Source: Octopus sinensis
Lineage: Eukaryota
DNA: 64,000 nt
NCBI RefSeq assembly: GCF_006345805.1
Contig: NC_043001.1
Span: forward strand, 32,488,001 to 32,552,000
Direction: 5' to 3'
This document shows positions 7,931 through 62,298 of this stretch, in pieces; within the stretch, counting starts at the first letter, position 1; each line of letters begins with the position of its first letter. A program made the position numbers and the translations under genes. The notes beneath the pieces are model-generated. The model was not told the DNA's origin. It did not search any database and worked only from the letters and a program-made list of their open reading frames with translations.

Positions 7931-7976
<46 letters not shown>

Positions 7977-8005: not shown

Positions 8006-8071
<66 letters not shown>

Positions 8072-8121
8072 GTACATACATATATCATATACAATATATA
8101 TACGTACATACATACATACAG

Positions 8122-8178
<57 letters not shown>

Positions 8179-8260
8179 TGTATGTATGTACGTAGGTATG
8201 TATGTATGTATGTATGTACGTAGGTATGTCTATGTGTGTCTGTGAGTATGTATACGTTTG
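6920..8260. repeat. Degenerate (TA)n/(CATA)n microsatellite tract
   Basis: About 1.3 kb of interrupted TA repeats; it produces the poly-IY ORFs in the ORF track. Confidence 0.95.
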
Positions 8261-20104: not shown

Positions 20105-20529
20105 GAGATTCTTTTCTACTCTAGGCACAAGGCCCAAAATTTTGGGGGAGGGGGGGCAGTCGATTAGATCGACCCCTGTTCGCAACTGGTACTTAATTTA
20201 TCGACCCCCGAAAGGATGACAGATAAAATCAACCTCGACAGAATTTGAACTCAGAACGTAGCGACAGACGAAATACCTATTTCTTTACTACCCACAAGAG
20301 GCTGAAAACAGACGACAAACAAGGACAGACAAACGGATTAAGTCGATTATATCTACCCTAGTGCGTAACTGGTACTTATTTAATCGACCTCCAAAGGATG
20401 AAAGGCAAAGTCGACCTCGGCGGAATTTGAACTCAGGACGAAATACCTATTTATTTACTACCCACAAGAGACTAAACAGAGAGGACAAACAAGGACAGAC
20501 AAAGGGATTAAGTCGATTACATCGACTTA
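20105..20529 (-). mobile_element. SINE family 2, nested or tandem copies carrying the Tx1-like 3' tail
   Basis: Two iterations of ACTACCCACAAG...GGACAAACAAGGACAGACAAA...AAGTCGATT are present; the second is cut at 20529, where GC-rich DNA begins. Confidence 0.75.
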
Positions 20530-20961
20530 ATGGATCGCGCGGCAGCCTCCTGGCGACCGCCGCTAGTCTGCCGGTATTGGTCGCGGCTACGTCCACGTTG
20601 ATATGGGCGAGACCGCGAGCTTTCGTTCATTTACGACTGGCGGTTGCCTTTCGCTGGCGGCCACGGCGCATAGACGAGTAGGGAACAGACGTCGGCGTGA
20701 AGGCGGGGGCCACCGGCTATTTATTGACCGACTACTTGCTACTCCGTCAGGCAGAGAGTCAGAGTTACTCCCGCCGATTGACCGCGCGGAATTTCTTATT
20801 CATTGGCGTTGGTGCACTCGTGCTCGATATCGCTGCTGACGACTGAGAACTCGTCGGCCGTCGACCGCCTCATCAATAACACACGGACACACACACTCGT
20901 ACTCTCGATCGCTCCCAACGACCGAGTCTCACTTAGTCTCGCCGTTTGTCCGCGCTTCTTC
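20530..20961 (-). pseudogene. GC-rich mosaic of diverged nuclear 28S rRNA segments (helix 69 region, twice)
   Basis: The minus strand has CGGCGGGAGTAACTCTGACTCTC (20754-20776), 22/23 identical to canonical 28S CGGCGGGAGTAACTATGACTCTC. A second, more diverged AAGCGCGGACAAACGGCGAGACTAAGTGAGACTC lies at 20924-20957. Confidence 0.7.
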
Positions 20962-24464: not shown

Positions 24465-25595
24465 CTAACCATAAAAGAGTCTGGGCAGGTAGTATCGCTG
24501 GAGCAAGAGGAATTTCTGTCGGGGTTTCAGCGGAGCCCTGCACATTTTACTAATGTCCAGGGACACCTGCTCCACTGAATCTAAATCGAACTCCCGACTT
24601 GAGGTCGAAGTCCACGTGGGGATATTAACACCTAGATAAGATATTCTCTTCCCCGGTTCTACCTTTTTAATAGTGACACCATCGACACTCGGCGGGGTGT
24701 TCTCGTTGACAAGGTAGGACTTGCCCCAGCCGCGGATGGAGAACCACGCGCACTTATCGACATTAAGCCCTTGTCCAACCGTGCGATAAAACTCCAGGCA
24801 TCTGTCTATAAGAGCCTGGAGACCATCGCGCAATTTTGCAACTAGGGCCATGTTGTCAGCGTACGCGATTCCATCCATCCGGATCCCCATAACTTGCAAA
24901 TCCCCACTGCCGGATAACACATTTAGCAGCGGGTTTGTTGCAATGCTGAAGAGGATCGGCGAGAGCGCGTCCCCCTGTCTAACACCTCGACGAATCTCTA
25001 TGGGTTCACTAAGTTGCCCAACGACTGAGAATCTGTTAGTGCTACCTTCGTAGATCCTCTCCACGAGCGCTAAAACATGCTCGTGGAACCCAAGTCTCCG
25101 CAGTCCCGCATAGACCAATGAATGCGAGACTGTCGAAGGCCTTGGAGAGATCCAAGAAGGCAACCTCCAGCCGCGGTATTCTCAGTCGTGCTGGCTTCAC
25201 CATCGCGCGAATGACGAGCTGTCGCAGGAGAAATGAATTCTCACTGCAGCCGTCAGCGCAGATAAAGCCTCTTTGGCTTGGATTGAGGGGAGTTACCTGA
25301 AGCATGCGTTTGGCGACCATTTTCGAAATAAACGATATGCCGCAGAACATATCGTAATTGGTCGCCAAGTTGCAAAATCGTAGGGGTCGTCTGCCCTCTT
25401 TGATACGAGGACAGACCTACCCCGCTTCAGGATGTCGGGTACCTTACCCGCCAGCAACATGCAGTTGCATATATTTGCGAGGATAGCTGGGTCCATTGAT
25501 TTGATTTCACTAATTGTGAGACCAACTGGACCCGCCGCTGAGGAGATCATCTTGCGTCTACTAACTTTAACCTCCTCCACGGAGAACGGTCTCAA
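24465..25595 (-). pseudogene. R2 reverse transcriptase domain (three frames; catalytic YADD reads YADN)
   Basis: ORFs 25293-25595, 25042-25368 and 24465-25163 carry RT motifs 0-7. Confidence 0.9.
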
Positions 25596-31768: not shown

Positions 31769-32221
31769 ATAAACATAACAATAAAATACAAATATAAACA
31801 TAAAAAATAAAAACCTAAATTGAAAGAGGCGATTAAAATTTTTTGCCTACCGTGCAGCCGTTTCAGAAGAGTGGGTGTACGAAGTATTCGAAATACAGCC
31901 TTCCTTCCTCAGGGTTCCTTTCTCGAGGTAAAATCCAGCAAAAATCAGAAAAGAACTACATAGTGATGATTCAGATGATTTTATTACTACCCACAAGGGG
32001 CGAACATAGAGGGGACAATACAATCTGATGTGGGGTCAGACATACGGATGGTTTTTACAAAAAATCGGATTTAAAAATATCATGAAATTACAAGAATACA
32101 CACAAAATCAAATGATGGAATAGACCGGAAGACATTACAGATGGAGTGGGTGCGGATTTAGCTCGGACCCCACGAGCCCCGCCTCCCCACTGATACTTTT
32201 GGTTGCGCTTGGTATTACCAT

Positions 32222-35070
32222 TTATGTTGTATCTTTCACTCGCAACTTCCGTGCCACATCTTTCCATCGTTCTTCATACACTCTCCTAGTCAGGCATATT
32301 CTCTCCAGCCCTATCTTCCTTTTCAGGTGGAAGATGAAATAATTCATCAAACCAGGGCCAGAGATGAACTTGCCTGACTGTAAACCTTTCACTCTCGTCT
32401 TCAATATCACCTCTTTCGCAATTGCTACTACAACGAGAAAACGAAACTTACCTTCATTCACGAGGAAATCCGGTGGGTCAATTTTTGTAATCGACACAGT
32501 CGAAAGCTGTACTCTTCGTGTACCTGACAACAGCTGTTCGGCATAAACCCACACCTCAGACACGTCCGGACAATGAACAATAGCGTGCGGGACGGTTTCC
32601 CTATCCCGCCCGCCATCTTGGACATATCGGACTGTCTCGGCCACCGTGCCTTGCGAGTTATCCCGAACAGGTAGAGCTCCTCTGTAGCATTGCCATGCCA
32701 GAGACTTCTGGAAGTTGTCCAGTGTCCTCGGCTTGAACGTACGTCGGAACAGACTGGCCAGCTGATTATCGTCGAGACCTAGGGTTTCCCCCAAGGTATC
32801 TTCACATTCCGCCTCTACCAACCCTCTATAGAAGAATGTGGTGGAACCCCCACCGCAGGCGTTGCCCGAGCGACGGAATAGCAGGAGAGCCTTCCGACAC
32901 TGACTTTTCGCGACTGACTTTTCGCGATTAACTTTTGCTCCTGTCACCGTCTCGTAAACCTCTATGGCCTTGCCTACTTTACATAGGTGGTTCATTTCGG
33001 TTACGATGATGGTGATGTCATCCGCGTACGCTGACACTGATTTTCCATTACCCGGCTGTCGCGGGATGCCGCTCAGTTTTCGCAGTAATGGCTCTAGAGC
33101 CATCACGTACAAAAGCGGGGAGAGCGGACACCCTTGACGAACCGAGCGTTTGATTTTGAACGGCTTCGACAAGAAGCCGTTCACCCGAACTACCGAGTCG
33201 ATGTTATCATACATTTGGATAATCCACCTGAGGAAGCCAAGGCTCAGCCCGAACTGTGCCAGGGCAGATACCAGGTAACGATGGTCGACCCTATCAAAGG
33301 CTTTAGATTGGTCTAAATGGACCAGTACCCCACCCTTGCCAGAATCATTATTAAACCCCTCTATAGTGTACCGCATTAGATGGAGATTATCCTGAATGGA
33401 TCTGCCCGGAACGGCACATGTCTGTGCCTCTCCGATCAGACCATCCGCGACACGCGCCAATCTTTTCGATAACACTTTGGCCAAAATCTTCAACTCTGTG
33501 TTTAGCAGAGTGATGGGCCTGAAATTATCAATGCACTCCCCTTGCTCGGGTCCTTTCTGACGAGAGTCACTACTCCCCGGCGCACAGATCTGGGTATAAG
33601 CCCGTTCTGCTGCCAGTTCGCATAGACCTCCGCCAGTAGGTGCCCGAACAAGTCTGGCATACTCTTATATAACTCATAGGGTAGACCATCCAAACCCGGC
33701 GCCTTGCCTGCGCCGCAGTCCGCCATTGCCTCAAACACCTCCTCAGGCGTGATTGGCCCTTCACAGCCCTCCGCATCTCGCCCCGATAAGCGCGGCAGCC
33801 CGTCGAGTAGGTCCGTAAAGGCCCTCCTCCTATCCAGTCCGCCGCACTCACCGAAAAGCTGAGCGAAGTGCTCCTGAAAGGCCTCACACATCTCCTCGGG
33901 TTCATTTATCAACTCACCTTGTTGGTTCGTCAAAGATCGAATCGTGGCACCGTTACCATGCTGAGCTTCCACCTCTCGGGCCCATCTCACGGCGTTGATT
34001 CCTTCACATCCCATATGGCGGATTCTAGCCCTGACAATGCAGCCCATGTGTTTGGCCTCGAGGTGCTGGTTTAACACCAGTCTCTTGGACGCCACCTGAG
34101 CCGCAGAGCCAGTTTTCATGGCTTCCTCTAATTCCTTAACTAGAGTATTATCCCCTCTAGCCTCTCTAGCCACTACTCCTATGCTATATCTAATAGACTC
34201 AAACTTGATGGCTCGTTTGAGGGCATACCACCATTTGTTATTAATGATGGTACCGGATAGTGCCCTCTGAATTATGTTCCTAATCCGGTCTTTGTACTCC
34301 TTAATCGCCAATAGGGACGTATTAAGTTTCCAGTAACCGGATCCTCTATTTCTAACCTTATCTATGTCAAGCTTACAAGTGACCATTTTATGATCACTGT
34401 AGCTGATCGGGTAAAACTGTGGACACTTAGCTATTTTACTGTCTACTTTTCTAATTAGAATTCTATCTATATATGACCTGGAAGATCCGTCGCTGTTTGA
34501 CCATGTCCACAATGGAGCGTTCGGAAATTCCAGCCTATACGGATCTGCTAGCTCAAAGCGGCTTAGCAGTTCCATGAAGCCACTGTTACCTCTCCTATCT
34601 GGACACGAGCCAACACAATCTACATCCGCTTTGCAAATTGTGTTAAAGTCTCCTAGCACCACTAATGAATGCGAAGTACCAAGAAATTTTTCTAGATCAC
34701 GAAAATAATCACTTTGCCCTTTTTTACTGTTGGGTGCGTAAATTGCAACCAGTCTGATAACTTTACCATTACTGAACGTCAAATCCATGACGACCAGCCT
34801 ACCTTCTGGATCTGCAAAAATTAACTTTTTCTCAGAAACCCGGTTTCTTTTTAATAGGACCAACACCCCTCTCCCGCCTGTAGGACTGCCAGGAGAGAAA
34901 AAACTCTCGTAGCCGTCAAACAGCGGGAGAAGACCTCTTGGCCCCTCTAACCAGGTTTCTGTAGCAACAATAACATCTAATTACGCGACCTGATATCATG
35001 CAGGAAGCGACCTTGCTTCCAGCCTGCTCCCAGGCCGCGCACATTCAAACAACCAACATAAATGTAATCA
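32222..35070 (-). pseudogene. Family A copy 1 ORF2 (APE endonuclease, RT), frameshifted and deleted
   Basis: ORFs 33502-34866 and 32222-33493. Confidence 0.9.
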
Positions 35071-35384
35071 TTACTTACCTTATATCAGTGGTTCGGTTTT
35101 TTCGTTTTCTTCTTTTTGTGTCTTTTTTCTGGGCCTCGTGGGGGAGTCTGACGCAGGCCCTCGAATATATATGGAGATGTTATATCCATTCTGAGCGGGC
35201 CTACGTCATGAAAAAATTCGGACTTTATCCGTCCGTAATCCTTCCGGCCTATTCTGTACAATACATAGTCATTTTTCCTCCCAATTTTTTCTACTTTGGC
35301 CATCGCTGCCAACACATTACCGAGTCTATTGTTCGTGGCCTTAACGGCCATAAATGAGTTCAACGACTCTTTTTTTTTTTTGGT

Positions 35385-36398
35385 TTACTTTGGGAGGGGT
35401 GGTTTCAGTTTTTCTTTTTTTCTAGTGATTTTTGACCACCCCTCCTCCTTTTTCGTTTCCTCGCTCGTTTTTTCCTCCGCCGTTGGTTCCGCTGCCTCTG
35501 TCACCTCCACACCTTCAGCCGTCCCTCCTGGGCCGACCAGCGCTGTTTCTGATGACACCTCTTCTGCTTTTCCACTTGGCTGAGCTGCTTCCTGCGGTTT
35601 AGGTTGGGGTTGGCATTCTGCCCTTACATGCCCTTTCTTACCGCAGCCGAAGCACCTCGGCTTTCTGCCCTCTACGAAGACTGTGACTCTCTCATCTTCG
35701 CTTATCTTTAGAGTCTCTGGAATCTCCTCCAGGGTTTGTATTTCTGCCTGGATGGCTATTATTATCCGTTGCCCTTTCCAGAATTCTTCCTCCTCTACAG
35801 TGGCCTGGAGGATGTTTATTTTTTCCTCCAGGCCTACCATAACTGCTGCCACCAGAACTTCGGCATCCGCTTCTGGCGGAATATTATTCATTGTGATCTT
35901 GGATGTTCTTTTGCCTTTATACAGGGGTAGGAGAACAATATCCTCCGCTTTTATTGGTTCCATGGATAGCTTCTTCGCTACCTCCTCTGATGTGAATCTC
36001 ACCTCCACTGTGCCGTATTTCTTCCCTCGATTGATATATGTGATTTTATCCATTATCGGCTTTAAGCAATTTTCGATTTTTTTCTCCTCTATTTTTTGTA
36101 TTGATCTGCTTGTTGTATTGAAGGTCTTATAAATTATTCTTCTATTTGTAATTTCCTCCTGTTTTTGGGCGTTTGAAGCCACGGTTACTTCCGTGCCCTC
36201 TTTTGACACACAGTCCGCATGTTTTTTTAGGTTTTCCACATTAATTTTTTAAATTTTCTTGCCAGCTACTTCCGAAAATTTTTTCGCTGGTGCTGGAATC
36301 TTTTTTTTTTTTGGCGACCCCGCCTCTTTTTTCTTTGGCGACACCGCCGGTGATCCTGCATCACTTGTCACAGGTGAATACGAGATGGGTGATTCCAT
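35385..36398 (-). CDS. Family A ORF1 (gag-like, CCHC knuckle); ATG at 36398 with an in-frame TAA at 36249-36251
   Basis: MESPISYSP...SPKKK...FSEVAGKKI* (49 aa) continues in frame into the 284-aa ORF 35385-36239. Confidence 0.75.
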
Positions 36399-36620
36399 CT
36401 CCGATAACTGGCTTTAACAAGCCCTTGGCACAACCAAGATAATGATAGTTTTTCCCCCACGGAGGGGGGAACACCAACACGAAGCCCTCGCACGAAGGCC
36501 GACTTCAATAGTTGTAACAATACAGAAAGACAGCTAGACACACAGTAGATCACCACGGAGAAAATATACACAAGGCAAAAATATAATAACTCACTATACA
36601 CTATGACGAGTATTCAGTTG

Positions 36621-39600
36621 ATTTTATTACTACCCACAAGGGGCGAACATAGAGGGGACAATACAATCTGATGTGGGGTCAGACATACGGATGGTTCTTA
36701 CAAAAAATCGGATTTAAAAATAACATGAAATTACAAGAATATACACAAAATCGAATGATGAAACAGACCGGAAGACATTACAGGTGGAGTGGGTGCGGGT
36801 TTAGCTCGGACCCCACGAGCCCCGCCTCCCCACTGATACTTTTGGTTGCGCTTGGTATTACCATTTATGTTGTATCTTTCACTCGCAACTTCCGTGCCAC
36901 ATCTTTCCATCGTTCTTCATACACTCTCCTAGTCAGGCAAATTCTCTCCAGCTCTATCTTCCTTTTCAGGTGAAAGATGAAATAATTCATCAAACCAGGG
37001 CCAGAGATGAACTTGCCTCCCTGTAAACCTTTCACTCTCGTCTTCCATATCACCTCTTTCGCAATTGCTACTACAACGAGAAAACGAAACTTACCTTCAT
37101 TCACGAGGAAATCCGGTGGGTCAATTTTTGTAATCGACTCAGTCGACAGCTGTACTCTTCGTGTACCTGACAACAGCTGTTCGGCATAAACCCACACCTC
37201 AGACACGTCTGGACAATGAACAATAGCGTGCGGGACGGTTTCCCTATCCCGCCCGCATCTTGGACATATCGGACTGTCTCGGCCACCGTGCCTTGCGAGT
37301 TTATCCCGAACAGGTAGAGCTCCTCTGTAGCATTGCCATGCCAGAGACTTCTGGAAGTTGTCCAGTATCCTCGGCTTGAACGTACGTCGGAACAGACTGG
37401 CCAGCTGATTATCGTCGAGACCTAGGGTTTCCCCCAAGGTATCTTCACATTCCGCCTCTACCAACCCTCTATAGAAGAATGTGGTGGAACCCCCACCGCA
37501 GGCGTTGCCCGAGCGACGGAATAGCAGGAGAGCCTTGTGACACTCCGTGTACCAAGTACCGAGTTTCGATCTACGATTCGACCAGGTTTCCCGTCCACCG
37601 AAACTAGTGAACTTGGGAAACATCAGTTTTGCTAACGGAGACCACACCCGTTCACCATCCAAGTAGAGCCACAGATGTCTTAACCTCAGCGCATGTCTGC
37701 ACATCATCAGCCAAGGCATCCCTAGCCCACCCTTTAACGGTTGTTGACAGCAAGTAGAGCGTTTCACAAGTGGTTTCCTACCCTTCCACAAGAAGTAGAA
37801 GAGCTGTTTTTCCAACTTGGTCAACCACGAATCGGGGCAAGGAACGACGGAAAGGCGGTAGGTGATAACCGATGCGATAAACACATTGGCCACCTCCGCC
37901 CTCCCTTTCAAGGATAGCCACCGCCAAGACCAGGTCTTGGCTACTGCAGCCACCTTGCTCGTTACCTCGCCCCAATTCTTCTCTATTTGGAGGTCTGGAC
38001 CGAACCAGACCCCTAGCAATTTAATCGGACCCTCCGTCCAACGTCCCACGACGCTGTCAGGAGGCATAGACTTGCCTCTCCAGGTGCCGAGTTGCAAGCC
38101 GACTGACTTTTCGCGATTAACTTTTGCTCCTGTCACCGTCTCGTAAACCTCTATGGCCTTGCCTACTTTACATAGGTGGTCCATTTCGGTTACGATGATG
38201 GTGATGTCATCCGCGTACGCTGACACTGATTTTCCATTACCCGGCTGTCTCGGGATGCCGCTCAGTTTTCTTGCAGTAATGGCTCTAGAGCCATCACGTA
38301 CAAAAGCGGGGAGAGCGGACACCCTTGACGAACCGAGCGTTTGATTTTGAACGGCTTCGACAAGAAGCCGTTCACCCGAACTACCGAGTCGATGTTATCA
38401 TACATTTGGATAATCCACCTGAGGAAGCCAAGGCTCAGCCCGAACTGTGCCAGGGCAGATACCAGGTAACGATGGTCGACCCTATCAAAGGCTTTAGATT
38501 GGTCTAAATGGACCAGTACCCCACCCTTGCCAGAATCACTATTAAACCCCTCTATAGTGTACCGCATTAGATGGAGATTATCCTGAATGGATCTGCCCGG
38601 AACGGCACATGTTTGTGCCTCTCCGATCAGACCATCCGCGACACGCGCCAATCTTTTCGATAACACTTTGGCCAAAATCTTCAACTCTGTGTTTAGCAGA
38701 GTGATGGGCCTGAAATTATCAATGCACTCCCCCTTGCTCGGGTCCTTTCTGACGAGAGTCACTACTCCCCGGCGCACAGATCTGGGTATAAGCCCGTTCT
38801 GCTGCCAGTTCGCATAGACCTCCGCCAGTAGGTGCCCGAACAAGTCTGGCATACTCTTATATAACTCATAGGGTAGACCATCCAAACCCGGCGCCTTGCC
38901 TGCGCGCAGTCCGCCATTGCCTCAAACACCTCCTCAGGCGTGATTGGCCCTTCACAGCCCTCCGCATCTCGCCCCGATAAGCGCGGCAGCCCGTCGAGTA
39001 GGTCCGTAAAGGCCCTCCTCCTATCCAGTCCGCCGCACTCACCGAAAAGCTGAGCGAAGTGCTCCTGAAAGGCCTCACACATCTCCTCGGGTTCATTTAT
39101 CAACTCACCTTGTTGGTTCGTCAAAGATCGAATCGTGGCACCGTTACCATGCTGAGCTTCCACCTCTCGGGCCCATCTCACGGCGTTGATTCCTTCACAT
39201 CCCATATGGCGGATTCTAGCCCTGACAATGCAGCCCATGTGTTTGGCCTCGAGGTGCTGGTTTAACACCAGTCTCTTGGACGCCACCTGAGCCGCAGAGC
39301 CAGTTTTCATGGCTTCCTCTAATTCCTTAACTAGAGTATTATCCCCTCTAGCCTCTCTAGCCACTACTCCTATGCTATATCTAATAGACTCAAACTTGAT
39401 GGCTCGTTTGAGGGCATACCACCATTTGTTATTAATGATGGTACCGGATAGTGCCCTCTGAATTATGTTCCTAATCCGGTCTTTGTACTCCTTAATCGCC
39501 AATAGGGACGTATTAAGTTTCCAGTAACCGGATCCTCTATTTCTAACCTTATCTATGTCAAGCTTACAAGTGACCATTTTATGATCACTGTAGCTGATCG

Positions 39601-41811
39601 GGTAAAACTGTGGACACTTAGCTATTTTACTGTCTACTTTTCTAATTAGAATTCTATCTATATATGACCTGGAAGATCCGTCGCTGTTTGACCATGTCCA
39701 CAATGGAGTGTTCGGAAATTCCAGCCTATACGGATCTGCTAGCTCAAAGCGGCTTAGCAGTTCCATGAAGCCACTGTTACCTCTCCTATCTGGACACGAG
39801 CCAACACAATCTACATCCGCTTTGCAAATTGTGTTAAAGTCTCCTAGCACCACTAATGAATGCGAAGTACCAAGAAATTTTCTAGATCACGAAAATAATC
39901 ACTTTGCCCTTTTTTACTGTTGGGTGCGTAAATTGCAACCAGTCTGATAACTTTACCATTACTGAACGTCAAATCCATGACGACCAGCCTACCTTCTGGA
40001 TCTGCAAAAATAACTTTTTCTCAGAAACCGGTTTCTTTTTAATAGGACCAACACCCCTCTCCCGCCTGTAGGACTGCCAGGAGAGAAAAACTCTCGTAGC
40101 GTCGTCAACAGCGGGAGAGACCTCTTGGCCCCTCTAACCAGGTTTCTGTAGCAACAATAACATCTAACGCGACCTGATATCATGCAGGAAGCGCCCTGCT
40201 TCCAGCCTGCTCCCAGGCCGCGCACATTCAAACAACCAACATAAATGTAATCTATTACATACCTTATATCAGTGGTTCGGTTTTTTCGTTTTCTTCTTTT
40301 TTTGTCTCTTTTTCTGGGCCTCGTGGGGGAGTCTGACGCAGGCCCTCGAATATATATGGAGATGTTATATCCATTCTGAGCGGGCCTACGCCATGAAAAA
40401 ATTCGGACTTTATCCGTCCGTAATCCTTCCGGCCTATTCTGTACAATACATAGTCATTTTTCCTCCCAATTTTTTCTACTTTGGCCATCGCTGCCAACAC
40501 ATTACCGAGTCTATTGTTCGTGGCCTTAACGGCCATAAATTAGTTCGACGACTCTCTTTTTTTTTTTTGGTTTACTTTGGGAGGGGTGGTTTCAGTTTTT
40601 CTTTTTTTTTTCTAGTGATTTTTGACCACCCCTCCTCCTTTTTCGTTTCCTCGCTCTTTTTTTCCTCCGCCGTTGGTTCCGCTGCCTCTGTCACCTCCAC
40701 ACCTTCAGCCGTCCCTCCTGGGCCGACCAGCGCTGTTTCTGATGACACCTCTTCTGCTTTTCCACTTGGCTGAGCTGCTTCCTGCGGTTTGGGTTGGGGT
40801 TGGCATTCTGCCCTTACATGCCCTTTCTTACCGCAGCCGAAGCACCTCGGCTTTCTGCCCTCTACGAAGACTGTGACTCTCTCATCTTCGCTTATCTTTA
40901 GGGTCTCTGGAATCTCCTCCAGGGTTTTATTTCTGCCTGGATGGCTATTATTATCCGTTGCCCTTTCCAGAATTCTTCCTCCTCTACAGTGGCCTGGAGG
41001 ATGTTTATTTTTCCTCCAGGCCTACCATAACTGCTGCCACCAGAACTTCGGCATCCGCTTCTGGCGGAATATTATTCATTGTGATCTTGGATGTTCTTTT
41101 GCCTTTATACAGGGGTAGGAGAACAATATCCTCCGCTTTTATTGGTTCCATGGATAGCTTCTTCGCTACCTCCTCTGATGTGAATCTCACCTCCACTGTG
41201 CCGTATTTCTTCCCTCGATTGATATATGTGATTTTATCCATTATCGGCTTTAAGCAATTTTCGATTTTTTTTCCTCTTTATTTTTTGTATTGATCTGCTT
41301 GTTGTATTGAAGGTCTTATAAATTATTCTTCTATTTGTAATTTCCTCCTGTTTTTGGGCGTTTGAAGCCACGGTTACTTCCGTGCCCTCTTTTGACACAC
41401 AGTCCGCATGTTTTTTTAGGTTTTCCACATTAAGTTTTTAAATTTTCTTGCCAGCTACTTCCGAAAATTTTTTCGCTGGTGCTGGAATATCTTTTTTCTT
41501 TGGCGACCCCGCCTCTTTTTTCTTTGGCGACACCGCCGGTGATCCTGCATCACTTGTCACAGGTGAATACGAGATGGGTGATTCCATCTCCGATAACTGG
41601 CTTTAACAAGCCCTTGGCACAACCAAGATAATGATAGTTTTTCCCCCACGGAGGGGGGAACACCAACACGAAGCCCTCGCACGAAGGCCGACTTCAATAG
41701 TTGTACAACAATACAGAAAGACAGCTAGACACACAGTAGATCACCACGGAGAAAATATACACAAGGCAAAAATATAATAACTCACTATACACTATGACGA
41801 GTATTCAGTTG
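36621..41811 (-). mobile_element. Tx1/L1-type LINE, family A copy 2 (full length, about 5.2 kb)
   Basis: Nearly identical to copy 1 but retains the GLQLGTWRGK...WYTECHK segment. Most frameshifts fall in homopolymer runs. Confidence 0.92.
36865..40255 (-). pseudogene. Family A copy 2 ORF2 (APE, RT, C-terminal CCHC), split by 1-bp indels
   Basis: ORFs 39989-40231, 38762-39853, 38262-38885 and 36865-38322; C-terminal CPRCGRDRETVPHAIVHC. Confidence 0.9.
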
Positions 41812-43490
41812 ATTTTATTACTACCCACAAGGGGCGAACATAGAGGGGACAATACAATCGGGGAACTTAAAATAAGAAAGCGAATGACAAGAAAAGGAAA
41901 AAATAAAAGTAAAAAATGACATATGAAAGAATATTTACAATGAGATGTAAATGTCCACTCGATCCCCGGAATCGAGAGGTTACATTTTCGTCACATATAT
42001 TTCACAATATTTTCTTTTCTCTCTTTTTTTTTTCCTCTCACAATTCTATACATATTCCATAATTTTCTTTCAATTCTCTAAAGTCCATCACTGAGCCCTC
42101 AGGCAGCCGCTCTCTCACTCGAACACTCGTGTAAAATATTACACTCTCTCCGGCAGCTCTGAGGAACTCAGCGACTCTTTCTTCGGGGATTAGAGCAGTC
42201 TCCTGCCACTGATCGGTCATCCTGTTGACCCATATATGTCCCTCCGTATTACATGTCAAGTCTTTCATTTCAGGGCAGAAATGGAAGGTTACTAACTTGT
42301 AGAAGCAGTAATCTTGTTTCCGTCCTACGTTTTCCTTCATTTTCTTTTCGGGCTTATTTCTTCCTTGTTCTCCTCTCTTTTTTTCTCTCTTTCTCTCTTT
42401 TTGCCTTCTTTTCTTTCTCCTTCTTTCTCTTGTCTTTTTGGTTCTTTGTCTGTTCTCTCTTTCTCTCGTGTTTTATGTTCCTTTTCTTTTTCTTTTTGTG
42501 TGCCGTCTTTTCTTTTCGTTTGATTCTGATCTCTCTCTTGTTTTTTCCTGTTGTTTCTTTTTCCTTTTTTTTTTCCTGACTCTGTTTTGGTTCTATTTCT
42601 TTCTTTTCTTTTATTTCTTTTTCCTTCATTGACTTATTATTTCCTTTCTCTTGTTGTTTTGTTTCCTTTTCTATGTTTTCTTTTTCATTTACCGTATTCT
42701 TCTTTTCTTCAAGTTCCTGCTCGCACTCCGCTACGAATTCGTATAACGGGCACTCTTTTTTAATGTGCCCCCTTGTCCCACACAAGTAACAGTTTGGTTT
42801 TCTTCCCTCTACAATTACACTGAGGGTTTTTTCATCTTCAATTTCTATTCTGTAGGGGAACCTTTCAATGTCCTCTTTTGTGGCCATCAAAACAGTTCTA
42901 CCCCATATCCTCTCCAGTTTACCGCGTTGGACTCCTTAAAGGATTCCACCTCCACTTCCTCTTCTGCTGCTCCTAGAATAGCTGTTGCCAGCCATTCTGT
43001 TTTCACTTCTGGGGGTATATTCGGGATTTTAACCCGGACCCCTCTTCTTCCTTGTATGAGGGCCACATTGTGAATTTTTCGGCTCTTAGAACGGTGGTAG
43101 CCAGTGAGGCTGCAATTTCTTCCGTTGCACATCTCACCTCCACCGTACCAAATTTCTTGCCTCTACTCACGTAGGTTGTTTTCCCCATTATGTCTCCCAG
43201 ACATTTTTCAATTTCGGCTATCTCCAATCTTGCCAGTTTCTTCGTATTTTTGTCTTGGGTTCTGTATGTCACTGTCTTGCTTTCTTTATCCTCTTTTGCT
43301 TTCGCGGGGGGGATTAGCTTCACGCTATCACCCTCCCTTTTGAACAGCTTTTCATATTCTTTGAGTTTATCCTTCTCAAAGAAAACCTCCTTTATGATCA
43401 TCGACGAATCGTTATTTTTCCCGGTGACCCCCGCGTAAGTCGCCATGACTAGAGGGTCAATTCACCTTTTTCGGAAGGTTTCCACACGTG
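41812..43490 (-). mobile_element. ORF1-only non-autonomous retroelement, family B copy 1 (about 1.7 kb)
   Basis: The ORF starts MATYAGVTG and contains RGKKFGTVEVR and CYLCGTRGHIKKEC, with no EN or RT. It shares the 49-nt 3' tail of family A. Confidence 0.85.
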
Positions 43491-45246
43491 ATTTTATTAT
43501 TACCCACAAGGGGCGAACATAGAGGGGACAATACAATCGGGGAACTTAAAATAAGAAAGCGAATGACAAGAAAAGGAAAAAATAAAAGTAAAAATGACAT
43601 ATGAAAGAATATTTACAATGAGATGTAAATGCCCACTCGATCCCCGGAATCGAGAGGTTACATTTTCGTCACATATATTTCACAATATTTTCTTTTTTCT
43701 CTTCTTTCTTCTCTCTCTTCTCACTATTCTATACGTATTCCATAATAGTTTTCAATTCTCTAAAGTCAATCACTGAGCCCAGGCAGCCGCTCTCTCACTC
43801 GAACACTCGTGTAAAACGTTACACTCTCTCCGGCAGCTCTGAGGAACTCAGCGACTCTTTCTTCGGGGATTAGAGCAGTCTCCTGCCACTGATCGGTCAT
43901 CCTGTTGACCCATATATGTACCTCCGTATTACATGTCAATTCTTTCATTTCAGGGCAGAAATGGAAGGTTACTACTTGTAGAAGCCGCAATCTTGTTTCC
44001 GTCCTACGTTTTCCTTCGTTTTTCTTTTCGGGCTTATTTCTTCCTTGTTCTCCTCTCTTTGTTTCTCTCTTTCTCTCTTTTTGCCTTCTTTTCTTTCTTC
44101 TTCCTTCTCTTGTCTTTTTGGTTCTTTGTCTGTTCTCTCTTTCTCTCGTGTTTTATGTTCCTTTTCTTTTTCTTTTTGTGTGTGCCGTCTTTTCTTTTCG
44201 TTTGATTCTGATCTCTCTCTTGTTTTTTTCCTGTTGTTTCTTTTTCCTTTTTTTTTTCCTGACTCTGTTTTGGTTCTATTTCTTTCTTTTTTTTATTTCT
44301 TTTTCCTTCATTGACTTATTATTTCCTTTCTCTTGTTGTTTTGTTTCCTTTTCTATGTTTTCTTTTTCATTTACCGTATTCTTCTTTTCTTCAAGTTCCT
44401 GCTCGCACTCCGCTACGAATTCGTATAACGGGCACTCTTTTTTAATGTGCCCCCTTGTCCCGCACAAGTAGCAGTTTGGCTTTCTTCCCTCTACAATTAC
44501 ACTGAGGGTTTTCTCATCTTCAATTTCTATTCTGTAGGGGAACCTTTCAATGTCCTCTTTTGTGGCCATCAAACACAGTTCTACCCCATATCCTCTCCAG
44601 TTTACCGCGTTGGACTCCTTAAAGGATTCCACCTCCACTTCCTCTTCTGCTGCTCCTAGAATAGCTGTTGCCAGCCATTCTGTTTTTACTTCTGGGGGTA
44701 TATTCGGGATTTTAACCCGGACCCCTCTTCTTCCTTTGTATGAGGGCCACATTATAAATGTTTCCGCTCTTAGTACAGTGGTAGCCAGTGAGGCCGCAAT
44801 TTCTTCCGTTGCACATCTCACCTCCACCGTACCAAATTTCTTGCCTCTACTCACGTAGGTCGATTTCCCCATTATGTCTCCCAGACATTTTTCGATTTCT
44901 GCTATCTCCACTCTTGCCAGTTTCTTTGTAATTTTGTCTTGGGTTCTATATGTTACAGTCTTGTTTTCTTTGTCCTCTTTTGCTTTCGCGGGGGGGATTA
45001 GCTTCACGCTATCACCCTCCCTTTTGAATAGCTTTTCATATTCTTTGAGTTTACTCTTCTCAAAGAAAACATCCTTCACGATTATCGACGAATCATTATT
45101 TTTCTTTCCCGTGACCCCCGCGTAAGTCGCCATGACTAGAGGGTCAATTCACCTTCTTCAGAAGGTTTCCACACGTGGAGGCAAACGCCTCGCGCGATAT
45201 TAAATCAATTTACACAGAACAAATTTCACTGACGAGTATTCAGTTG
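43491..45246 (-). mobile_element. ORF1-only non-autonomous retroelement, family B copy 2
   Basis: Near-identical to B1 and extends to the CAACTGAATACTCGTCA 5' end (45230-45246). Confidence 0.85.
44276..45133 (-). CDS. Family B ORF1 (gag-like, CCHC knuckle, Lys/Glu-rich C-terminus)
   Basis: 285-aa open ORF, homologous to family A ORF1 (RGKK.GTVEVR...NIPPE...VEGRKP.C..CG..GH...EC). Confidence 0.8.
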   Translation of the reverse strand: MATYAGVTGKKNNDSSIIVKDVFFEKSKLKEYEKLFKREGDSVKLIPPAKAKEDKENKTVTYRTQDKITKKLARVEIAEIEKCLGDIMGKSTYVSRGKKFGTVEVRCATEEIAASLATTVLRAETFIMWPSYKGRRGVRVKIPNIPPEVKTEWLATAILGAAEEEVEVESFKESNAVNWRGYGVELCLMATKEDIERFPYRIEIEDEKTLSVIVEGRKPNCYLCGTRGHIKKECPLYEFVAECEQELEEKKNTVNEKENIEKETKQQEKGNNKSMKEKEIKKRKK

Positions 45247-45702
45247 GTGACAGTTCCGTTTTCTACTTTCTGATTTATTTATGAATAAGTGACAGATTTA
45301 AATAAGAAATGAAATTCATTCATGCAAATAATAGCCAACGGGAATATTCCACTCTCTACTATGAAAAAATAACTTAAGATACAGGTTTGTGCATAAGTGT
45401 TCGTTGTATCTAATCATCAAAAAGCTTTTATATTCCAAAAAATTATATTTTAATGTAAAAGAAAATAATAAGACGCTAAATATTTATGCTTACAACATAC
45501 TAAAATGTCTGTAATTTTTAATATAGGGGTGAATAAATGAATTCTTGTGTCCCCTATATCTAATTTTAAAAATTATATAAATTTTCCTAAGTCCGGAGCG
45601 TGAAACTAATAAACCTGTTTGCTGTTTACACGCCCGTCTTCGTCTTTTGTTCGTTTCTTTCGTAAATTCCAAATATGTATGTATGTGTGTGTATGCATAT
45701 AC

Positions 45703-46234: not shown

Positions 46235-48340
46235 TGTTTCGGTATTGGCAACATGAATGACAATGGCCAGAGACTACTTGAATTTTGCACCTGTGCATCA
46301 CTAACACATTATTTGCCAACAAGACATACCACAAGGCATCTTGGAGACATCCAAGATCTCACCACTGGCATCAGCTGGATCTCATCATTACACGAAGACC
46401 CTTTCTGAATTCTGTTCAACTGACTCGTAGTTACCACAGCGCGGATTGTGACACAGATCATTCACTAATAAGAAGCAGGGTGAGGATTCTGCCTAAAAAG
46501 TCCATCACTCGAAGAAAATGGGCCGACCACGCATTAACACTGCCAGAACCTCCGACCCTACACTGCGACAATGTTTTGCTCTTTCTATCAAAGTTGCCCT
46601 CAGTAGCTGCTCAACCACCTCTGCTGAAAGTAGGTGGAATTATATCAGGGAAGCTTTGTATACCACATCAATAGATACTTTCGGCATGAGAGAAAGGCAA
46701 AACCCAGATTTTGATCAGTGCTGGGCTCTCAGAGCTGGAAACAGTTATCGAAACAAAGCGTGCAGCTCTTATGTAATACAAGAGTGATTCTTCTATAAAG
46801 TCACTTGAAGAACTCAGAAAGGCAAGAAATAAAACCCAACTGACAGCCAGACGCTGTGCAAATAGGCATTGGCAGGAAATCTGTCAGAGTATCCAGTCAG
46901 CTGCTGACAGTGGCGACACCCGTGGGATGTATGCCGGTTTGAAGAAGGCCCTCGGTCCATCCGCAACCAAGTCAGCCCCTCTGAAATCAACTACTGGGGA
47001 TCTCATCAAGGACCAAAGCAAGCAAATGGATAGATGGGTGGAGTACTACCAGGAACTCTACTCACGAGAGACCACGGTAGCTGAGGCTGCAATCGAGGGT
47101 GTCAAGATCTTGCCAGTCATGTGTGAACTTGACAGTCTGCCATCTATAGCAGAGCTCACCAAGGCTATTAACTCCCTAGCAAGTATCTCCGGGAAAAGAC
47201 GGCATCCCCTTAGAGATCATCAAAACCGGCAAAAACACCATCCTGCTTCGGCACATTCATAAGCTTCTGTGTCAGTGCTGGGAAGAGGGTACAGTCCCTC
47301 GAGATATGCGGGATGCTAACATCATTACGTTTTACAAAAACAAAGGTGAACGTGGTGATTGTAACAATTATCGTGGAATATCTCTTCTAATCACTGTTGG
47401 GAAGGCCTCTGCTTGCATTATCCTATCCAGGCTGCAACTGCTGGCTTCTCGAATTTATCCAGAATCGCAGTGTAGCTTTAGAAGAAGCAGATCAACTATT
47501 CACATGATATTCTCCATACGCCAACTTCAGATGTCCAGAGAGCAGAAAATGCCATTATATATGGCCTTCATTGATCTGACAAAGGCTTGGTAAGTAGAAA
47601 AGGCCTCTTCATCCTGCTCCAAAAAATCGGATGTCCACCAAAGCTGCTGAAGATCATCACATCTTTCCATGATGATATACAAGGCACCATACAGCACAAT
47701 GGTTCAATATCAGCCGCCTTCTAAATAAAAAATGGAGTAAAGCAAGGTTGTGTCCTTGCTCCTACATTATTTGGCATCTTTTTCTCCTGCTGCTATCACA
47801 TGCCTTTGTGACATATAATGATGGAGTGTTTCTGCACAGTAAAAGTGATGGGAAACTGTTCAATCTCTCGCGTCTGCGTGCCAAGACCAAAATCAGAAGC
47901 GTCCTGATCAAGGAGATGCTATTTGCTGATGATGCCGCTCTGGTATCACACACAGAAGAAGCCCTACAAAGGCTCATCAACTGTTTCAAGCAAGCATGTG
48001 GCAACTTTGGCTTATTTATCAGCCTCAAGAAGACCAACATCATGGGTCAGGCTACATCGACCATCCCAAACATACATATTGGAGACCACAGACTACAGGA
48101 GGTGGAGAAGTTTACCTATCTTGGATCTACCGTCACCTAAAACCTATCCCTTGATACAGAGCTCAATATACGCATTGGCAAGGCAGCTGCTGTGATGGCC
48201 TAACTCTCCAAACGGGCATGGGACAACAATAAGCTGACCAAGACCACAAAAATGAAGATTTACCAGGCATGCGTACTTAACATTCTACTGTATGGAAGTG
48301 AGACTTGGACGCCATACACACGCCATACGACGCCATACGT
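46235..48340 (+). mobile_element. RTE-clade (BovB-like) LINE ORF fragment, decayed
   Basis: Contains NDNGQRLLEFC, SWRHPRSHHWHQLDLII, HSADCDTDHSL, NYRGISLL, FIDLTKA, GVKQGCVLAPTLF, LFADDAAL and VEKFTYLGS. Confidence 0.9.
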
Positions 48341-56689: not shown

Positions 56690-57315
56690 GTAAAGTTGAA
56701 ATTTGGTCCGTCTTTACGTTCTGAGTTCAAATACCGTCGAGGTCGGCTGTGCCTTTCACCCTTTTGGGGTCGATAAATTAAGTACCAGTCAAGTACTGGG
56801 GTCGATGCGTTCGACTGTCCCCTCCCCACAAAACCCAGGCCTTGTGCCTATTGTAGAAATGATTATTATTACCGAAAATTAACGCGGCGAGGTGGCAGAA
56901 TTGTTGGAGCATTTCGTCCATCTTTACGCTCTGAGTTCAAATCCGGCCGAGGTCGATTTTGCTTTTTTGAGGTCAATGAAATGAGCTACACACTGACGTT
57001 GATATGATTGACTGGCCCTCTTCTTCCCCCAAATTTCAGGCCTTGTGCCTATAGTAGAAAGGGTTATTATTATTATTACCGAAAAGTAAGGCAATGAACT
57101 GGCAGAATCGTTAGCACGCCGGGCGAAATGCTTAGCGGTATTTCGTCTGCGGTTACATTCTGAGTTCAAATTCCGCCGAGGTCGGCTTTGCTTTTCATCC
57201 TTTTGGGGTCGATTAAATAAGTACCAGTTACGCACTGGGGTCGATATAATCGACTTAATCTGTTTGTCTGTCCTTGTTATTCCTCTGTGTTTAGCCCCTT
57301 GTGGGTAGTAAAGGA
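56690..57315 (+). mobile_element. Cluster of three SINE family 2 copies; the last (about 57087-57315) has the Tx1-like tail
   Basis: TTCTGAGTTCAAAT...GGGGTCGA...AGTACCAG is repeated; the last copy ends GCCCCTTGTGGGTAGTAA (57294-57311). Confidence 0.8.
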
Positions 57316-59173: not shown

Positions 59174-59203
<30 letters not shown>

Positions 59204-59204
<1 letters not shown>

Positions 59205-59776
59205 GAAAGGATTAGAGACAAACACTTTCCTCTCTGGTCAATCTCTCATCAACTTCTTCAAGTATCACTTGAAGAGGAAAGTGAGAGGAGAGTGGCAAGT
59301 TTTGTCTAGTGAATGTTTTAAAAAAAGATGGGTGAATGTAGCAAGGATGGCACGTTGAATGACAGCCACCTTGCTATGATTCTATGAACCGTAAAAATTA
59401 ATACAGAGATTTGCTTATTTGCAAAAAAAAAAAAAAAAGAATATAACATGTGACTTCATTGACCGAGGTTACCGTGGTCTTTTCCGTAGGCTTTTCCTTC
59501 CACGGGTAAACCTCACTGTCCTCCCCTTTACACTTCATATTGACATTCTGTGATTACGATCCCTATTGATCAACTTTTTTTTCCTCCCCCCTTTTCTTTT
59601 TTTTCCCTCTCCCCCACTTTTTTTTAAATCCTCCCTTTTTTGTCCTCTTTCTTTCCTTTTACGATCCCTTTTGATCGATCCAAAACCAACCCCTTTTTTT
59701 ACCCCCAAAAGAAAAGCTCTACCTGTAATTGTTCTTCTGTGTGTGCAGCCCTGTGTGGCTATAAAGAAACATATCT
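59204..59776 (+). mobile_element. Family C LINE, 5'-truncated, embedded in (ATCT)n
   Basis: Encodes KGLETNTFLSGQSLINFFKYHLKRKVR...KKRWVNVARM, with (ATCT)n on both sides. Confidence 0.85.
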
Positions 59777-59892: not shown

Positions 59893-60861
59893 GAGGATTA
59901 AATAAAAAGACAACGACAAGAAAACATGACATAGCTATATATATAATGAAAAGACACGTGTAGTATATAAACAAACATGCTAAATACACGGGCGAATAGA
60001 AAACACAGAATGTCATCAATTTTTCATCAGTTATCGCCCACAGGGTCAAACGCAGTTTCAGCCATTAGCCACCTTCCACTATTAAGTGACCCATGAGGAC
60101 CTAAGCGGCGGTGTCATTCTTTTTCGCATTGCCTTCCACCGCACTGGACATGATTTTCTGAGCTCTTTGCCCTACACATCCCGTATCTAAAGTCCTTTAG
60201 TACAGTTGTCATTTCTCCCTCGCGTTACACACTTATACCTTGTCTTGCAGTCCCAAGGCTTTTTGTTCTATATGTATTATCATTATTAATTGTTGTCTTC
60301 GTGTGGGCCTAAGTCTTTATTCTGTGTATTGTTTTGTCCCTCGTCCGTCTACTAACGGTCTTGTCTCGAACCGGTCTCATTTTATGTTTTGGTTTGATTC
60401 CCGGCAAGTTCCTTGTCGGTGCCTTCAGAGTGGAAGCTATATTATCGATAATGGCAAGGCGGCAAGCTGGCAGAAACGTAAGCACGTCCGTCTTTACGCT
60501 TTGAGTTCAAATTCCGCTGAGGCCGACTTTGCTTCTCATCTTTCGAGGTCGACAAGTTAAGTACCAGTTGTGTACAGGACCCGATCTAATTGACTGGCCC
60601 CCTACCCCAAAACTTCGGGCCTTGTGCTTAGAGTAGAAAAGTATATTATCGACAAAGGCTGAAAATGCGTTTGACCCTCTGGCCGATAACTGATGAAGAT
60701 TTGGTGACCTTCTTTCTGTTCGCCCGTGTATTTAGTGTATGTTCGTTTGTCTATTTACTACGCTATTTTGAATTATGTGTGTGTAATATTTTCCGTTTGT
60801 TGTTTTATAATTTAATCCTGAAGATATTATTTACATAACGCACGCACTCATTAATGTTTTC

Positions 60862-60955
<94 letters not shown>

Positions 60956-62298
60956 TTAAAGGATGCGTCCCGATGGTCAGGCGATCCATTTGCTGTCAAC
61001 ACCCGTTAAAAGGAGGGCTGGGCATGCCGTGGTTGATGATGCGCAGACACGCGCTGAGACTGCGACATCTCTGGCTCTATGTAGACGACGGTGAACAGGT
61101 GTGGTCGCCGTTGTGGAGGCACGCTTTCCCGCAGCTCGTCTCCATGACCGAACTGCAGTCGTGGATCAAAAAGAGGCCGAGAAGGGCGAATGGCACCGCG
61201 CGAGTGTCGCGTTGCTCTCAAGCAACTCTGCCGTCCTGGGTCGACCTTAAGTGACTTCAACACAACCAAAGCATTCTATAGGGGTTTAGTGGAGGGGAGG
61301 TACGACGACGAGCTCGGGGCGAACCTGGACGTCGACGAGGAGTACCTGACCCGCCTGTTCGGGACGACTTTCGGTCGGGCCAGGGCCCATGGACAACTTC
61401 CAGAGATCCCTGGCCTGGCAGTGCTACCGAGAAGCGCTACCCGTCGGGTAACTCTACAGACACGGCTCGAGAAACACGGGGCCGACCTGCCCGAGATGCG
61501 GTCAGAGCGACGAAACCGTTCTGCACGCACTCGTTCAGTGTCCAACAATTTCCGACCTGTGGGCTTATGTCGAACAACTGCTGTCACGTGTGGGACGAGT
61601 CGGTTTATCAGCTGAGTCTATCGTCAATATTGTCACGCCTCCTTCTTCAAACGGGAAGGGAGAGCTATTTTCATCATCCTTGTGGCTATGGCGAAAGAAT
61701 GTATCTGGTGGACGCGTCTGAAAGGATTGGAGACAAACACTTTCCTCTCTGGTCAATCTCTCATCAACTTCTTCAAGTACCACTTGAAAAGAAAGGAGAG
61801 TAGAGAGGCAAGTTTTGTCTAGCGAATGTTTTTAAAAAAAGATGGGTGAATGTAGCAAGAATGGCACGTATGAATGACGAAGCCACCTTGAGCATAGTCC
61901 TATGAACCCAGAAATCGAAAACAGAGAGTTGCTTATTTGCAAAAAAAAAAAAAAAAAAGAAATATAAAATGTGACTTCATTGACCGAGGTTACCGTGGTC
62001 TTTTCCGCAGGCTTTCTTTCCACGGGTAAACCTCACCTGTCCTCCCCTTTACACTTCATATTGACATTTCTGTGATAACGATCCCTATTGATCATTTTTT
62101 TTCCTCTCCCCCCCCCTTTTTTTTTTTTTTAACCCCCCTTATTTTGGTCCTCTTTCTCTCCTTTTACGATCCTTTTGATCGAACCTCCCCTTCCTTTTTT
62201 TTTTTTTTTTTTTTTTTTTAATACCTTCAAAAGAAAAGCTCTACCTTGTAATTTGTTCTATCTGTGTGCAGCCCTGTGTGGCTAATAAAGAAACATAT
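60956..62298 (+). mobile_element. Family C Tx1/L1-type LINE, 5'-truncated (1.35 kb), embedded in (ATCT)n
   Basis: MVRRSICCQHPLKGGLGMPWLMMRRHALRLRHLWLY is homologous to family A ORF2. Flanked by (TCTA)n at about 60862-60955 and ATCTATCC...TCTATC at about 62297-62325. Confidence 0.88.

Follow-up and report, generated by a model that had tools for sequence, protein, structure and literature searches.

Recurrent head-to-tail arrays of an L1-superfamily LINE and ORF1-only partner elements in Octopus, probably built by successive insertion at one site

Four retroelements on one strand of an Octopus sinensis locus

A 64,000-nucleotide stretch of the Octopus sinensis genome (contig NC_043001.1, positions 32,488,001 to 32,552,000; hereafter the window) contains a head-to-tail array of four retroelements: two copies of a long interspersed nuclear element (LINE), here called A, and two copies of a shorter element, B, which has a first open reading frame (ORF1) and no second one (ORF2). 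All four lie on the minus strand, their 3' ends being at the low coordinates, and reading 5' to 3' gives the order B2 (45246-43491), B1 (43490-41812), A2 (41811-36621) and A1 (36620-31977). The placement of the boundary is ambiguous by 1 nt (a C) at every junction of the window. A previous sequence-only reading of this DNA had proposed four elements on a single strand; this layout stands, with coordinates that were off by one and with a plus-strand presentation that has to be replaced by the minus strand. A1 (31977..36620, minus strand, 4,644 bp; 3'-most) and A2 (36621..41811, minus strand, 5,191 bp) are defective copies that share 98.7% identity over 3.7 kb and 97.6% over 0.9 kb. B2 (43491..45246, minus strand, 1,756 bp; 5'-most) is an ORF1-only element of the full-length type that belongs to subfamily beta, and B1 (41812..43490, minus strand; gamma-like subfamily) is 95.5% identical to it, begins at B2 position 70, i.e., with the first 69 nt absent, and abuts the B2 tail directly. 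The array is bordered by unique sequence on both sides; A1 would be its oldest element and B2 its youngest.

The elements are connected by their ends. As had been reported, a 49-nt tail is present on all four of them (31977-32025, 36620-36668, 41811-41859, and 43490-43538, the last copy differing by one substitution) and occurs exactly four times, and the minus strand contains a 17-mer, CAACTGAATACTCGTCA, at 36604-36620, 41795-41811, and 45230-45246, but not at the B2/B1 junction; for either sequence no occurrence is expected by chance. The tail ends in AATAAAAT(C) without a poly(A) stretch, and its identity to A amounts to 48/48 nt in B1 and 47/48 nt in B2. DNA similarity between A and B is limited to this 48-49-nt tail, the 17-mer, and a weak match of 61-85 nt inside ORF1 (73-75% identity). 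The tail is presumed to be the signal recognized by the reverse transcriptase (RT), and since B has the exact 3' tail of A, B would borrow an A-type RT. Related tails occur in further ORF1-only families, in a tRNA-like short interspersed nuclear element (SINE; 57080..57315, plus strand) whose 3' end (…tctgtgtttagccccttgtgggtagtaaagg, at 57270-57315) is of the A/B tail family, and in a solo A-like LINE of Argonauta hians (L011; BAAFZT010000001.1, 9.78 Mb), which has an ORF2 identity of 52%, a conserved tail (…cggcccttgtggctaataaagaaatc), and no ORF1-only stack within 7 kb upstream. The similar tails of the Argonauta relative and the SINE indicate that the tail is an old, conserved 3' module. 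Its predicted RNA fold is no better than that of shuffled sequence (z = 0.44). Three SINE pieces at 20180-20540 (minus strand) are themselves arranged in tandem, tail-to-internal.

Element A is an L1-superfamily LINE with an N-terminal apurinic/apyrimidinic endonuclease (APE), an RT, and a C-terminal Cys-rich domain, in line with the earlier description of an APE and RT LINE: its ORF2 matches Exo_endo_phos (5.6e-9), RVT_1 (8.8e-28), and zf-RVT (2.4e-8), and among solved structures in the PDB an A-type RT (query, the copy of Octopus vulgaris locus L002, see below) is closest to human L1 ORF2p (3.5e-49), with R2 at 7e-25. It is probably a member of the Tx1 clade; its database matches gave no informative clade name, and a recent annotation of O. 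vulgaris reports 13 recently active L1-Tx1 families (PMC13282606). In ORF1 of A, zf-CCHC scored 14.1 bits, which is under the cut-off, and an aligned CFGCGKKGHVRAEC motif is visible nonetheless. Both A copies of the window are dead, and the label 'autonomous' given to them before does not apply. On the minus strand, A1 has its ORF1 at 35385-36239 and its ORF2 in two pieces, 33502-34866 (APE and N-terminus of RT) and 32222-33493 (C-terminus of RT), with frameshifts at amino acids (aa) ~31 and ~507 and a deletion of ~550 bp relative to A2 that removes aa ~720-902. A2 (also on the minus strand) has its ORF1 at about 40611-41428, disrupted by three frameshifts, and its ORF2 in three pieces, 38762-39853, 38262-38885, and 36865-38322 (RVT_1, zf-RVT), the reading frame being shifted at aa ~453 and ~662; the positions of the ORF2 frameshifts thus differ between A1 and A2. 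An apparently intact full-length A is present at O. vulgaris locus L010 (11082-16299), where 10 nt separate an ORF1 that is at least 324 aa long from an uninterrupted ORF2 of 1129 aa, and this copy is a candidate for an active source of RT.

Several other observations concern A and LINEs in its vicinity. The N-terminal coding part of A ORF1 contains 24-nt tandem repeats (36303-36348 and 41490-41537), and KKEALSP-like repeats are seen in the L002 copy. A fragment of a second LINE in the window (60847-61878, plus strand) is ~50% identical to the C-terminal part of A ORF2 and has a probable variant tail, GCCCTGTGTGGCTAATAA, at 62271-62288 (plus strand), another copy of which lies at 4866-4883 (plus strand). 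RT-like scraps of other LINE families with 28-43% aa identity to A ORF2 are located at 47186-47494 (plus strand), 24921-25130 (minus strand), and 59203-59355 (plus strand).

The ORF1 of B2 (44276-45133, minus strand; 285 aa, CCHC knuckle at aa 220-235) is shortened by a frameshift inside a K/E-rich region, and remnants of a C-terminal domain follow at 43781-43984 (minus strand). B1 is a dead copy with a fragmented ORF (43003-43446, 42887-43132, and 42354-42890, minus strand) and the conserved C-terminal domain at 42038-42340 (minus strand). Intact B-type copies of O. vulgaris (unit 5 of locus L001; the B' and B'' elements of locus L004) encode one protein of 467-493 aa over most of the 1.75-kb element, consisting of an RRM-like N-terminal region, a CCHC knuckle, a K/E-rich linker of ~130 aa, and the conserved C-terminal domain of ~95 aa. 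In B ORF1, zf-CCHC is above the cut-off (23.4 bits). The C-terminal domain is kept across the B families and has no detectable counterpart in A, and a search of 1.8 billion representative proteins returned only five matches to it, weak or from its own family; the AlphaFold model of B2 ORF1, made from a single sequence, was unusable (mean pLDDT 47.8).

The ORF1 proteins of A and B are 34% identical over 206 aa (E = 2e-45), and APE/RT similarity and ORF2 remnants are absent from all ~35 B-type copies examined, i.e., B has no ORF2 of its own elsewhere either. In terms of sequence, B is a distinct, diversified ORF1-only lineage and not a deletion product of A, as the sequence-only reading had suggested from the homology and divergence of the two ORF1s. 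B ORF1 is under strong purifying selection, which that reading had named as support for its model: over the first 245 codons of four copies of the B family and three from the diverged B' and B'' families, dN/dS is 0.12-0.20 over a dS range of 0.03-1.6, within B and between B, B', and B'', with one exception (B'' of L004 versus B'' of L006, 0.69 at dS 0.04). A third ORF1-only family, F, has an ORF1 that is ~34% identical to those of both A and B and a SINE-like related tail (…gtgggtaataaagaaat); its copies (L005, 8619-10262; L009, 8585-10265) are found in arrays together with B-type elements.

Protein matches to B ORF1 are from Octopus only (95-98% identity, several chromosomes of the O. vulgaris assembly GCA_951406725.2). 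The O. vulgaris gene calls include fragments of B ORF1 as 'uncharacterized' or 'NA' proteins of 216-380 aa, several per array; these genes are transposon ORFs. A lesion shared between B copies at ORF1 codon ~48-59 was considered and rejected, as the length of a poly-C tract at codon ~48 varies between copies (B2 region 44990-45000 and its B1 equivalent; C7 is in frame, and C6, C10, C13, and C14 also occur). Many copies have a frameshift there, and the tract is a hot spot for recurrent frameshifts that can be mistaken for a common lesion.

Arrays in Octopus vulgaris and their common target

The array of the window is not a one-off: mixed A/B head-to-tail arrays are present at nine other loci in O. 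vulgaris (L001-L004 and L006-L010), each B ORF1 protein match having been traced to an array. All nine repeat the layout C, ORF1-only elements, A, an optional E, and D2 on a single strand, where C, E, and D2 are parts of a flanking repeat described below, and the number of ORF1-only elements ahead of A ranges from one to eight or more. Eight B elements precede A in L001 (OX597814.1, 64.2 Mb), at least seven full B units and a partial unit at the end of the locus in L002 (OX597820.1, 100.1 Mb), four B in L003 (OX597816.1, 85.7 Mb), three B in L007 (OX597814.1, 115.8 Mb), and a single B in L010 (OX597816.1, 52.2 Mb). Other arrays combine families, i.e., B', B, B'', then A in L004 (OX597833.1, 32.9 Mb), two B'', then A in L006 (OX597820.1, 39.2 Mb), B'', then A in L008 (OX597821.1, 12.6 Mb), and F, B, a truncated B'', then A in L009 (OX597830.1, 57.3 Mb). 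A tenth locus, L005 (OX597815.1, 157 Mb), is different, in that F and a B-like element occupy one site within a SINE head. Repeats of 1.7-5 kb with 95-99% identity assemble poorly, and tandem order might therefore be mimicked by collapsed or mis-joined copies. However, the four units of the window have their own substitutions, indels, and truncations as well as clean junctions, and an independent assembly at chromosome level (GCA_951406725.2) shows the same architecture nine times, with variants specific to each locus, so that an assembly artefact has a negligible chance of explaining the arrays.

The nine arrays are inserted at one identical point of a dispersed repeat, T. This repeat is about 1 kb long, is edged by (TA)n on both sides, and consists of C (570 bp, non-coding), the optional E (310 bp, in one locus group), and D2 (~190 bp), the arrays being located between C and E/D2; parts of T were delimited in L001 (3693-4270), L002 (18112-18604), L006 (16221-16410), and L007 (8436-8563). 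No terminal inverted repeats, ORFs, RNA gene, or Rfam matches were found for T, and an Rfam search of the window array and one T-bearing locus gave no matches. C was rejected as a member of the arrays, as no spacer is present upstream of it. Two forms of T were entered at different but similar sequences, …TTTGAAC/ACATGG and …GCTAAC/ATTCCAG (the slash marks the insertion point). The outer ~130 nt of D2 are a separate small repeat with the hairpin GACCCGGCAACGACGGGTC, an inverted copy of which lies upstream of C in L007.

The location of the arrays bears on the proposal that they have a layout like that of the Drosophila telomeric elements HeT-A and TART, which did not hold. Were 3' ends attached to free DNA ends in a telomere-like manner, interstitial arrays would be relics of chromosome ends or healed breaks, and the mixed same-strand, head-to-tail arrangement of gag-only and gag+pol elements, the growth of arrays at the 5' side (see below), and the one tail-to-internal junction (B2/B1) would all be in keeping with this. 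Against it, each of the 10 O. vulgaris loci starts 12-157 Mb along a chromosome of 74-226 Mb and is at least 12 Mb from either end, the nine arrays on seven chromosomes are all bracketed by one pair of unique flanks (C on the 5' side, D2 on the 3' side), the junctions hold duplicated target sequence that also opens the 3' flank, and the RT is L1-like rather than of the jockey clade. End addition is thus very improbable; the interstitial location, the target-site duplications (TSDs), and the single site together point to repeated site-specific target-primed reverse transcription.

The duplicated target sequence is found in the spacers between the elements. In the window, the spacer CAACTGAATACTCGTC(A) (45230..45246, 41795-41811, and 36604-36620, minus strand) precedes B2, A2, and A1, respectively, and the target site recurs in the 3' flank as C/ATCTGAATCATCAC (31963..31977, minus strand). 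The spacers of L001-L003, L007, L009, and L010 are variants of (C)ACATGGAGGAAAT, e.g., ACATSGAGGAAAT, those of L004, L006, and L008 are TTCCAGTCT..., and that of L005 is GAAACGTYAGCACGCCG. Spacers thus differ between arrays and are nevertheless common to unrelated elements inside one array (B', B, B'', and A in L004), and they agree with the start of their own 3' flank (15/15 nt in L006, 15/16 in L008, 12-13 nt in L002, L003, L009, and L010, and 16/17 in L005). Taken together, these properties show that the 17-mer is not a common 5' signal; it is a locus-specific, regenerated TSD. The sequence-only reading was therefore right that the same 17 nt occur before A1, A2, and B2, and wrong in taking them as an element-encoded end signal and in describing the joins as lacking a spacer: the 17-mer is itself the spacer, the elements are linked through a copy of the TSD, and only the B2/B1 junction has none. 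Element bodies begin past the spacer, A at about (T/G)AGTGT(A/G)TAGTGAGTYATT and B at AGTGAAATTT, or 22 nt earlier in longer B versions. For A and its partners alike the TSDs are 9-22 nt long and the target is the same.

Upstream of the insertion point, GAAARCRG is found at a distance of 9-11 nt in three independent site classes, namely, T1, the window (where GAAAACGG lies at 45256..45263, minus strand, 9 nt upstream), and L005, while the T2 site carries GAAAAAAG in its place. The motif occurs 10 times in the 128 kb of strand of the window (about 8e-5 per position) and is a candidate part of the endonuclease target or recognition element.

The spacers also bear on whether a whole array could arise in a single event, either by serial template jumps of the RT or by retrotransposition of a read-through transcript of an existing array. 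The B2/B1 junction, which is tail-to-internal, has 1 nt of microhomology, and lacks a spacer, is what a template jump would give, and the B-to-A order suits a read-through B-A transcript. Template jumps, however, leave no target-site copy between units, and all other junctions have one; the spacers agree with the local 3' flank and not with a donor locus, array compositions differ, the layout is age-ordered, and a single cDNA of 13-25 kb would be required. A single-event concatemer is, on balance, improbable. As a separate feature of the window, (TA)n, (TG)n, and tetranucleotide repeats are abundant throughout, including a (TA)n microsatellite of 1.27 kb at 6917-8187.

Probable growth at the 5' edge and the proposed mechanism

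Divergence between loci separates the age of the flanks from that of the inserts. Between L003 and L010, C differs by 8.3% and E+D2 by 5.8%, and the bracketed A elements by 1.0%; between L002 and L003 the flank differs by 9.2% and A by 4.4%; between L009 and L010 flank and A are equally diverged (4.1% and 4.2%). Flanks that are older than the inserts indicate that at least some A insertions are independent entries into old T copies. The B units, in turn, group by subfamily rather than by locus, e.g., L001 unit 3 and L007 unit 1 are 0.2% apart while their 3' neighbours are 6.7% apart. Reading 5' to 3', the order is alpha (three units), beta (five), and A in L001; alpha (seven) and A in L002; alpha (two), a singleton (cluster 6, L003_3), beta, and A in L003; alpha, gamma (two), and A in L007; beta and A in L010; F, gamma, B'', and A in L009; and beta (B2), gamma-like (B1), A2, and A1 in the window. 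Wherever they occur together (L001, L003, L007), alpha is 5' of beta or gamma without exception, and A is 3'-most in 10/10 arrays. Derived spacer variants are nested toward the 5' end: L007 has ACATGTCTG at A, ACGTGTCTG at B3 and B2, and ACGTGTCGG at B1, and L002 has ACATGG at A, ACATCG at B7, B6, and B4 (three of the next four), and ACAGCG at the two 5'-most units. Subfamily order and nested spacers together argue that the arrays grew at their 5' edge, one insertion after another. A model in which elements insert directly behind any related tail was rejected, as the 5'-most element of L005 follows a SINE head instead of a tail and the youngest subfamily is 5'-most.

Amplification at the DNA level alone, by which one A+B insertion was expanded through unequal crossing-over or tandem duplication and the arrays were spread by segmental duplication, would account for neighbours that are near-identical including their tail variants (0.2-0.8% in L001 units 5-7, 0.6% in L007 units 2-3) and for flanks and similar spacers common to several arrays. 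It does not predict the same spacer at unrelated elements (B', B, B'', A, F) in one array, which duplication of a unit cannot yield, nor the clustering of B copies by subfamily across chromosomes in a constant 5'-to-3' order; moreover, between L003 and L010 the divergence of the flanks is 6-8 times that of the enclosed A elements, and the frameshifts of A1 and A2 in the window differ. This explanation is regarded as unlikely.

It is instead considered probable that the array represents retrotransposon insertions stacked successively at one nick site, with the A-type machinery serving the ORF1-only partners. The endonuclease/RT of A would prefer a particular target, in O. vulgaris the single site of T, and an A-type RT would recognize B RNA in trans via the 3' tail, as the common tail, target site, and TSD length suggest, so that B may be mobilized in trans by the RT of A. 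Each target-primed insertion would duplicate about 12-22 nt of the target, and the upstream TSD copy together with the unaltered upstream recognition sequence would stay a good target; this supposes that the endonuclease recognizes sequence upstream of the nick, by which the site would outlive each insertion. The next element would then enter at the 5' edge, between the unaltered upstream sequence and the spacer, and every element would gain the same spacer. The nesting of the spacers and the subfamily order fit such serial copying of the 5'-most spacer. The B2/B1 junction, with its 1-nt microhomology, may have formed when the RT jumped, in a single event, from one B RNA to the 3' end of another that differs from it by 3.5%, or else by a TSD-less insertion, and unequal crossing-over probably added some near-identical neighbours such as L001 units 5-7.

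Several points weigh against stacking at one nick site. The array loci were sampled from annotated B ORF1 genes of O. vulgaris assembly GCA_951406725.2. In the window, spacer and 3' flank agree at 8 of their first 9 nt (CAACTGAAT versus CATCTGAAT) before they diverge, and the three spacers are mutually identical yet unlike the 3' flank. Local and end-anchored alignments of the window flanks to T were not significant (z about 1.5-1.8, P = 0.26), and without detectable kinship to T the window array, like that of L005, is taken to have been entered multiply at a non-T site; repeated insertion at such sites is not predicted by a purely T-specific endonuclease. The B2/B1 junction is unlike simple serial TSD regeneration, the spacers vary much more than the element bodies do, for which error-prone fill-in has to be assumed, and the near-identical blocks of neighbours (0.2-0.8% apart in L001) could be DNA-level duplications.

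A further possibility, which is speculative and held with little confidence, is that the ORF1 protein of B, through its lineage-specific C-terminal domain, steers ribonucleoprotein particles with a borrowed A-type RT to sites occupied by A. If true, a 'landing pad' would be set up by an autonomous LINE and then occupied, from the 5' side, by its gag-only dependants. This would explain why A was inserted first in 10/10 arrays as well as the multiple insertions at non-T sites (window, L005), and the steering would parallel the Gag-directed targeting of HeT-A/TART, but at interstitial sites and with dependence on an endonuclease.

Relation to known retroelement systems

Successive insertion of A and its partners at one site can be compared with several known systems. 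Tx1-clade LINEs show a target preference that includes sites inside other transposons, and partner SINEs follow them (PMC4494074); target-specific examples are Tx1L inserted in Tx1D (Xenopus), Keno, Kibi/Koshi, and the crocodilian Tx1-Mar with its SINEU partners (PMC4494074). Similarly, A is an L1-superfamily APE and RT LINE that lacks poly(A) and has a candidate CCHC motif in its ORF1, the octopus arrays favour one site within another dispersed repeat, and the non-autonomous partners have the same 3' tail and target. The octopus partners differ in being protein-coding ORF1-only elements instead of SINEs, and as many as nine elements are stacked in order at an occupied target. Double insertions that leave a TSD in the junction give rise to tandems as well, e.g., the R1 array with 33-nt rDNA spacers and dimers of many Drosophila transposable elements (McGurk and Barbash 2018, PMC5932611). 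These share with the octopus arrays the head-to-tail units parted by a TSD copy, the tail-to-internal junction with a 5'-truncated downstream unit, and the possibility of later unequal exchange, whereas the octopus stacking is systematic at every sampled locus, involves several families in a consistent temporal order, and is not an occasional dimer of one family.

The resemblance to HeT-A/TART/TAHRE is functional only. A gag-only element appears to depend on the RT of a gag+pol relative, the mixed head-to-tail arrays grow at one end, and the gag-only partner is more numerous than the autonomous one; the octopus RT, however, is not of the jockey clade, the arrays are not at chromosome ends, their junction TSDs show endonuclease-dependent insertion, and, unlike those of HeT-A and TART, the 3' ends of the octopus partners are identical.

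ORF1-only dependants are already known, namely, HAL1 (half-L1) in mammals and, functionally, HeT-A. Like HAL1, B is a non-autonomous L1 relative that has kept its ORF1 under selection and lacks ORF2. It differs in being old and diversified (B, B', B'', and B-like elements, with F as a further family), in having an ORF1 that is only 34% identical to that of A, with its own conserved C-terminal domain and a dN/dS of 0.12-0.20, and in being site-specific and arrayed. Stringent-type LINE/SINE pairs are comparable in that a 48-49-nt 3' end is common to the autonomous and non-autonomous elements, the tRNA-like SINE having a related tail, but B encodes a selected protein, has a LINE-like 5' end, and lacks an RNA polymerase III head. 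What appears to be new is the combination of several ORF1-only families, which are under selection, have a C-terminal domain of their own, and ride the tail of a Tx1-like LINE, with systematic stacks in temporal order at a defined T site; no description of such a system was found in the literature searched, the coverage of which was incomplete.

The retroelement system is real and recurrent, and its description as a two-component system is borne out by the common 3' tail, the selection on B ORF1, and the repeated A/B arrays. Outside Drosophila and mammals, it provides a naturally occurring LINE system of two components, in which a selected, protein-coding ORF1-only lineage has persisted while it would rely on the RT of another element. 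The stacks, being in temporal order, are a readable stratigraphic record of subfamily activity, and the arrays offer a route to study trans-mobilization and the recognition of targets and 3' tails by a Tx1-like LINE. Lastly, they bear on how tandems of transposable elements seed satellite DNA and on the annotation of transposable elements in octopus genomes.

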